A DNA stretch of 63,456 nt, filler included, from Sluysia triapertura (taxonomy: Eukaryota): assembly GCA_046118255.1 (NCBI GenBank). It is 4 parts of 4 records of this genome, joined end to end, with 100 filler letters (N's around TTAATTAATTAA, not from the genome) between each part and the next. Parts side by side here need not be neighbours in the genome. Positions count along the whole stretch, not along the records: positions 1 to 27,033 come from JBJNIA010099767.1; 3 more parts are not named here. One strand, given 5' to 3'. Positions 25,339-26,537 of the stretch are shown here, in pieces; the stretch's first letter is position 1; every line of letters starts with the position of its first letter. The translations under genes and the position numbers were made by a program. The notes under the pieces were generated by a model. That model was given only the letters and a program-made list of their open reading frames with translations. It was not told where the DNA came from and did no database searches.

Positions 25339-25472
25339 CTGGAAAGCATATATAGTATCATAGAATAAAGTCCAACACAAACCAGCTATATAACTTGGCA
25401 AGACAACAGACCAAAAACAACTTCCAGCCACAGCTGCATAACCCAGCATTGCACCCCAATTAAAAGCAAATC
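25339..25472 (-). CDS. COQ2: COQ2 alternative exon, ubiquinone (coq-2a-type), 134 nt
   Basis: GTTACAG | (G)[44 protein letters not shown] | GTATAT. Canonical FNW and YA residues. Confidence 0.92.
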
Positions 25473-26537
25473 CTGTAACGCGAATGACGTTATATATTAC
25501 TTTTTATTATTATATTACTGTTGCTACATAACGTAGTAAAATCTACTTTTTTCAAGTTAAATTAAGATATTAAAAAACTACACATGAATACATAGCTCAC
25601 TTGTAATCCATAAATAGTATCATATGTAACCGTCCAGCAAATACTACCCAGATATATTGGCAAACACACTGACCAGTCCACTGCACCAACAACAGCACAA
25701 TAACTTATTACTATTCCACAGTTAAGTAAAGCCCCTAGAAAACATAAGATATTCCTTATCGCCTAATAAAATAAACTAGATTTTACCACTAGCAACAATT
25801 ATTTTAAAAACTTAGTATTTTTAACCGCTAAAAAAGCGTTTACGACATTAAAAATACTAAATCATGCATAACACTAAGAATTACCTAAAACAACTTGAGG
25901 CCAATATGTATATCGTTTAAATAATGGATACGTCAATATTAAACTAGATGACGCCAGACCTAATAAAATACTTCATAAATTATAACTATTTAAAATATTA
26001 CCTATAATTATTGAACTGCATTAGGATAAGAAGACAAGGCAAAGACAAGAGCGTTATTAAGCTTATAGCTTCTTTTACTGATACTGTCCCGTTTGCTAAA
26101 GGTCTGTCTTTAGTTCGTTCAACCTATAAACATAAATAAAGCTAAAATAATCTTACATGTTTATCAAAATCTTTATCCCATATGTCGTTCACAACACAAC
26201 CAGCTGCTCTCATTAATATTGCTCCAATTCCAAATAAACCTAACATTTTAATTGATGGCAAATAACCAAAAGGAGTTCCTAATGCTATTCCCCACGTACA
26301 GGGCAAAAAAAGCAACCATGTACCGATAGGTCTATCAATTCTCATTAATTTTAAATAAGGCTTTATTCTTTCAGGAGAGGAGTTCACAAACTTCTCTAAC
26401 CACTTCGAACCTTTTTCTTTATAAATTAAATTATTTTTATTTTTCTTTGGAGATAAATTAGGAAATGAGAAAAAATGTGACAATGTAATTCGATCACATT
26501 TGTAACATCTAATCCAAATTGTTTTTGTAGGTAACAT
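25339..26537 (-). CDS. COQ2: 4-hydroxybenzoate polyprenyltransferase COQ2, 5' part: exons 26537-26157, 26123-26002, 25970-25885, then alternative exons 25734-25601 / 25472-25339; 3' exons not found
   Basis: [34 protein letters not shown]|[28 protein letters not shown] and YDTIY. GT-AG introns of 33, 31 and 150 nt keep the frame. Confidence 0.96.
25601..25734 (-). CDS. COQ2: COQ2 alternative exon, putative rhodoquinone (coq-2e-type), 134 nt
   Basis: TTTTCTAG | (G)[44 protein letters not shown] | GTGAG. Leu at the F204-equivalent site. Confidence 0.85.

Follow-up and report, generated by a model that had tools for sequence, protein, structure and literature searches.

The coq-2 locus described here raises the question of whether Sluysia triapertura can direct its COQ-2 enzyme towards ubiquinone or rhodoquinone by choosing between two exons, and of what might govern that choice. 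An e/a splice switch of this kind is already described: coq-2 carries two 134-nt exons, 6a with Phe204/Ala243 and 6e with Leu204/Ser243, and rhodoquinone production depends on exon e (Tan et al. 2020, PMC7434440). Exon e precedes exon a in 17/17 species tabulated there, with sizes of 131-140 nt, Ser243 is invariant in the e exons, and independent origins of the e exon are left open; the tabulated species with the pair include two flukes and a planarian (Fasciola, Schistosoma and Schmidtea). When both residues were swapped together in exon a of C. elegans, cyanide survival was restored (Lautens et al. 2021, PMC8659336). In annelids, the Leu/Phe site best separates e from a, the Ala/Ser site varies and is not diagnostic, and siboglinids can keep the e exon without the full kynurenine pathway (Alvinella paper, PMC12403961), so that the pathway is not assured by the presence of exon e. 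Rhodoquinone also occurs in animals without the e exon. Against this background the locus makes modest additions, a Leu/Gly variant of exon e and a candidate RNA switch.

The window, that is, the whole stretch of DNA analysed, comprises 63,456 nucleotides, and the gene analysis covers one 27-kb piece of it.

Gene model of the coq-2 locus

Five coq-2 exons lie on the minus strand from 26537 to 25339, with introns of 33, 31, 150 and 128 nt. The features are as follows.

26157 to 26537, minus strand: coding exon 1, placed by Pfam UbiA (E 6e-10), boundary and frame
26124 to 26156, minus strand: intron 1, 33 nt, phase 0
26002 to 26123, minus strand: exon 2, 122 nt, Pfam UbiA E 5e-7
25971 to 26001, minus strand: intron 2, 31 nt, phase 2, acceptor ending in TGAAG
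25885 to 25970, minus strand: exon 3, 86 nt, constitutive, ending in phase 1, placed by Pfam UbiA and frame
25601 to 25734, minus strand: e-type alternative exon, 134 nt, Leu204/Gly243, donor GTGAG
25339 to 25472, minus strand: a-type alternative exon, 134 nt, Phe204/Ala243, Pfam UbiA

The upstream exons match the Pfam UbiA profile in order, and exon e alone, used as a query, returned COQ2 proteins. The gene is COQ2, of the UbiA family, with its alternative exons at the 6a/6e position; database searches and trees based on the spliced model were run exon by exon. Exon 1 offers 127 codons from the first in-frame ATG, encoding a basic N-terminal leader followed by the start of the UbiA domain and the first Asp-rich motif. 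For intron 2, the TGAAG acceptor, and no other, preserves the frame and recovers the S-I-L-L-G motif; a 41-nt version of this intron breaks the frame and was dropped. The three upstream exons sum to phase 1, and either alternative exon returns the frame to phase 0.

A DNA contig of sequencing run X1 spans 25218-26777 with zero differences and at single-copy depth, and comparison of the run contigs with the stretch revealed no diverged second coq-2 copy at 80% likeness. On the best explanation, the animal has a single coq-2 gene, of which 25339-26537 makes up the 5' two-thirds. The interval 26279-26488 also occurs, without difference and at a depth of 3.8, in run X2, which is labelled as another organism and contains the repeats too; this would reflect either low-level carry-over or a mixture of host, prey or parasite. 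Runs X1 and X2 list an identical longest record length, and as contig sets they show no spliced joints.

The surroundings of the gene are varied. The first half of a 256-codon ORF at 16607-17377 (plus strand) corresponds to an ERK/MAPK1 N-terminus (E 2e-19) that is decayed and carries an internal deletion; the remainder is unrelated. The interval 7420-7700 (plus strand) contains one exon of glutathione synthetase, its HLAGxK motif altered, and a motif scan of the piece found no other exons of that gene. The segments 14300-14237 and 13069-12972, on the same strand as coq-2 (minus), form the final two exons of a short-chain dehydrogenase resembling carbonyl reductase, with a weak PDB match, an identity that we presume from motif recognition as well; its upstream exons were not found. 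High-copy repeats occupy 22700-24700 and 26840-27033; the copy at about 22880-23280 is related to that at 26840-27033, and their summed depth comes near 500,000. The segment 24560-24045, which we take to be a hAT transposase relic, gave no Pfam match. An AT-rich 370-nt repeat is present in three diverged copies (70-81%), at 1188-1555, 1819-2190 and 6113-6483, and a run of N lies within the piece at 5945-6083.

The e/a exon pair and its affinities

The original prediction described a pair of homologous 134-nt exons, each with an AG acceptor and a GT donor, each running from phase 1 to phase 0, stop-free and 128 nt apart, and all of this is borne out. Double inclusion does shift the frame, as claimed, and exon a read after exon e runs into a stop. 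The residues named for exon a (Phe204/Ala243) and the Leu204 of exon e are likewise correct in the alignment. The Leu204/Ser243 logic holds for the upstream exon only in its first half, as position 243 is occupied by Gly, which had gone unmentioned, as had the absence of the gene's final exons from the piece and the pairing of the introns around exon e.

The two exons share 77/134 nucleotides, with 27, 31 and 18 of 44 identities at the three codon positions, and 21/44 residues. The corresponding pN of 0.37 is below the near-saturated pS of 0.59. When exon a was mutated neutrally to an equal distance in 5000 trials, 4% of the products were stop-free and 0.02% retained at least 21 identical residues. 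Neutral evolution of the upstream exon had been named as a possible outcome; the simulation and the pN/pS comparison point to constraint instead. Both exons are old and under purifying selection, the age of the duplication following from the near saturation of synonymous sites.

Besides Gly243, exon e carries Cys206 and Ser211 (W206C, G211S), at sites that hold Trp/Tyr and Gly, respectively, almost without exception among 253 a-type and 17 e-type sequences. It retains the motif YDTIY on the catalytic side together with N205, G207, P226, Y228 and W234, as well as an a-like DWSVCLP stretch. Leu204 is not proof by itself, because a few ordinary insect COQ2 sequences also carry it, and species without rhodoquinone repeatedly show Leu or Ile at this site. 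The Leu/Gly combination is also present in one e-type coq-2 of a rumen fluke (Calicophoron), and the LP[ST]Y change of exon a has a single other carrier, sequence P0062. Like the 6e/6a pairs of C. elegans, helminths, Schmidtea, molluscs and annelids, the pair has the same gene position, order, 134-nt size and phase, Phe/Ala in a, Leu204 in e, and a frame shift when both exons are used. It departs from them in Gly243, Cys206 and Ser211. A similar pattern is seen in annelid COQ2, where the Leu/Phe marker holds and the Ala/Ser site varies, although annelids are a different phylum. Judged by gene position, order, size, phase, Leu204 and the conserved donor, the assignment as a coq-2 e/a pair is well supported.

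The donor following exon e reads GTGAG in the window and in 5/5 fluke loci (Echinostoma, Fasciola, Opisthorchis and two Schistosoma), while the gene's other four donors start with GTA; this common donor would be one more sign of orthology. The order e before a and the range of 131-140 nt also hold in these five loci. Comparison with known a and e exons by phylogeny, as had been proposed, placed exon e with the fluke e exons in one tree with a support of 78 and left it unplaced in another. The exon trees, on 44 and 67 columns, lack resolution, the exon e branch is long (0.7-0.8), and a clade of the window's own e and a exons gives a p-AU of 0.45, so that this alternative topology is not rejected. 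Neither window exon groups firmly with the fluke exons.

Further traits of the gene bear on the affinity of its bearer. Like fluke coq-2, the window gene combines the e/a pair and GTGAG donor with a phase-2 intron at the same place (35-48 nt in flukes), has no intron within the RxDxPIG-TW stretch, and encodes LPCTW, YPLFKR and RTKDRP. LPCTW occurs in 23/23 flatworm sequences and in 0/3 nematode, 0/117 insect-set and 0/3 mollusc-set sequences; YPLFKR occurs in 18/23 flatworm sequences and is almost absent elsewhere. The protein also contains RTKDRP and G[TS]VS. The TGAAG acceptor of intron 2 recurs in two schistosomes, where the intron has 35 nt, and introns 1 and 2 (33 and 31 nt) resemble the size mode of about 32 nt at positions 1-2 in Gyrodactylus salaris (PMC4040987). 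Unlike the five flukes, which have lost it, the window keeps the first intron, between DK and V, and its GC is much lower (about 24% in the piece). The CVVND of the window protein is known in nematodes and molluscs and absent from flukes, the position of intron 1 is kept in Nematostella and in a nematode-like contig (L001), and in the exon-1 tree, which gives no resolution, a nematode-like contig is nearest; the best exon-1 match is nematode-like as well. Taken together, the coq-2 features probably point to a flatworm outside the digenean flukes, either monogenean or free-living, a nematode affinity being less likely; insect, vertebrate and mollusc affinities fit the motif table poorly and were set aside. 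No close relative was found in the protein sets (best identity 69% on exon 1 and 62% on exon e), in metagenome contigs, which mostly gave intronless bacterial-type UbiA, or in Atlas, and a solved-structure search with exon e or exon a gave no match.

Sluysia triapertura is absent from the species list of Tan et al. and Lautens et al. The claim of an unreported lineage is nevertheless weak, as flatworms with the pair are already published, although the pair may still be the first for a class such as Monogenea. The literature searched yielded no direct report of rhodoquinone in Monogenea.

Other animals provided several separate observations. Nematostella vectensis (GCA_000209225.1, L005:10001-18636) carries two complete, tandemly arranged coq-2 genes; the upstream gene has Leu204/Ser243, the e-type pair, and the downstream gene Phe/Ser. 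No paper on this tandem was found in the literature. The upstream gene would be an e-like COQ2 that arose in a cnidarian through gene duplication, and it may hold more interest than the window pair. Calicophoron daubneyi has two coq-2 proteins (P0304, P0306), one Phe/Ala and one Leu/Gly, with differences from end to end and contigs of unequal size, hinting that two genes may there have replaced the splice switch. An unannotated e/a pair of 134 nt each, Leu/Ser followed by Phe/Ala, occurs in Logan contigs of SRR22824300 and SRR22824280 (L003:239-1205, L004:183-1148). The nematode-like coq-2 at L001:5762-6381 has no intron before the e/a region, and its contig ends inside that exon; apparently there is no room for a switch at the usual place.

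Candidate RNA pairing around exon e

Base-pairing between the introns on either side of exon e may decide which alternative exon is used, as suggested by folding predictions for the following elements.

25809 to 25863, minus strand: predicted local 17-bp hairpin in intron 3, -17 kcal/mol
25766 to 25800, minus strand (core 25799-25778): candidate docking site in intron 3, predicted pairing
25757 to 25773, minus strand: candidate proximal selector, stopping about 22 nt short of exon e, local hairpin of -10 kcal/mol
25516 to 25555, minus strand: candidate distal selector in intron 4, stopping about 43 nt short of exon a, -30 kcal/mol

The predicted duplex between 25800-25766 and 25555-25516 encloses exon e, and its distal selector ranks 1 of 2700 windows. 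Its -30 kcal/mol is reached by 0/150 dinucleotide shuffles (mean -17.9, sd 2.4) and by 0/450 native pairs matched in geometry and GC (mean -15.9). The fold of the whole cassette is better than that of shuffles (z -2.6), and the intron 3 fold is equalled by 3/200 shuffles. Pairing with the proximal selector ranks 89 of 2700 windows and by itself is not above chance: if the distal arm is blocked or untranscribed, the intron 3 arm folds back weakly on 25773-25757, with 13-14/23 bases paired. At equilibrium, the full-length ensemble strongly favours the distal form, with exon e looped out, from 15 to 37 C. The pairing arms lie in near single-copy sequence and so are not the ends of a common transposon. 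The duplex is predicted from one genome. No significant homology was detected between the proximal and distal selectors, and pairing across exon a, between introns 4 and 5 (a 33-nt inverted repeat), was rejected as no better than chance (110/150 shuffles).

This arrangement resembles docking-site/selector control of the Dscam exon 6 type (PMC6071210) in that one arm of the upstream intron can pair before either exon and the distal pairing loops out the first exon; it differs from such systems in being predicted from one genome and in its weak proximal pairing. RNA pairing in coq-2 is not discussed by Tan et al., and a wider literature search found no such paper.

No shared arrangement was found in the five fluke loci. 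In Opisthorchis felineus (L091) and Echinostoma caproni (L002), the introns flanking exon a form a predicted duplex looping out exon a, reached in 0/60 and 3/200 shuffles, respectively; the other flukes gave no significant duplex, and several tests were made. Schistosomes share a conserved element in the intron between e and a.

Mechanism, alternatives and meaning

We consider it likely that the a-form yields ubiquinone and the e-form rhodoquinone, with competing pairing biasing the choice and the frame shift eliminating transcripts that include both exons. By analogy with C. elegans, splicing in exon a would give a ubiquinone enzyme using 4-hydroxybenzoate, and splicing in exon e an enzyme that prenylates 3-hydroxyanthranilate, leading to rhodoquinone and fumarate respiration. 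On the nascent RNA, the intron 3 arm could pair first with the nearby element before exon e, leaving this exon usable; pairing with the stronger intron 4 element would then loop out exon e and bring the exon 3 donor beside the exon a acceptor, over a path shortened by the 17-bp intron 3 hairpin. Transcripts with both exons would be degraded after the frame shift, and the remaining coq-2 exons would lie on another scaffold. The points against this reading are the absent Ser243, both residues having been changed together in the C. elegans test, the Cys206 and Ser211 of exon e, the Leu204 of some ordinary insect COQ2, the unresolved trees, the nematode-like signs in exon 1 and the 3' exons missing from the piece; as to the RNA pairing, they are a duplex seen in one genome, a proximal hairpin no better than chance and an equilibrium fold that strongly favours skipping of exon e.

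Several of these points can be read differently. An orthologous exon e that is drifting, rarely spliced or rhodoquinone-incompetent, and kept skipped mainly by the duplex, would account for the long branch, the changes at the near-invariant Trp206 and Gly211 and at Ser243, and the loop-out favoured at equilibrium; hypoxia may also matter less if the host is ectoparasitic or free-living. The exact length, both splice sites, the lack of a stop, the retention of YDTIY and the five residues listed with it, and the neutral simulation (P 0.0002) all speak against this, and we regard drift as unlikely. Even less probable is that the upstream exon arose as an independent, lineage-specific duplicate of a with a convergent Leu204 and another or no effect on substrate. 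The p-AU of the window-only clade, the a-like DWSVCLP kept in exon e, the recurrence of Leu/Ile at 204 and the origins left open by Tan et al. (PMC7434440) would allow for this, but the order shared with all known pairs, the GTGAG donor shared with flukes and the old duplication indicated by the synonymous sites speak against it.

The missing 3' end invites yet another explanation, an orphan 5' coq-2 fragment (a partial duplicate or pseudogene) amid gene debris. The last exons are absent from the 25 kb downstream of exon a (motif scan, tblastn, four HMMs, six frames) although the same HMM method recovers all five upstream exons; nearby lie a decayed ERK copy, an isolated exon of glutathione synthetase and two of carbonyl reductase, with high-copy repeats on both sides. 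Yet all five exons are intact, and the single-copy depth, with no diverged second copy, disfavours an orphan. Intron 5 enters a high-copy repeat at about 25060-25265, where the flanking contigs, among those listed, overlap by 21 bases, less than the 31 needed for a bridge, and fluke coq-2 3' introns reach 8 kb. The gap is thus likely due to a misjoin in a fragmented assembly or to a long intron, and we consider an orphan fragment very improbable.

A bolder extension of the preferred splice-switch reading, which we hold to be possible although doubtful, joins three elements: a host group without a reported e/a pair (for example a monogenean, an unsampled flatworm order or, less likely, a further phylum), a Leu/Gly exon that makes rhodoquinone, and a pre-mRNA structure sensitive to transcription speed or temperature that sets the choice. 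If true, this would be the first cis mechanism for the coq-2 switch, whose splicing control is not addressed in the literature searched. The whole cassette with its candidate RNA arms takes up less than 600 nt, compact enough for a minigene test. The Leu/Gly variant offers a natural test of whether residue 204 or 243 determines substrate choice, and the pair brings a further taxon to bear on whether exon e has a single origin or several. COQ-2e has been proposed as an anthelmintic target, so that its occurrence in more groups of flatworms would be of some practical interest.
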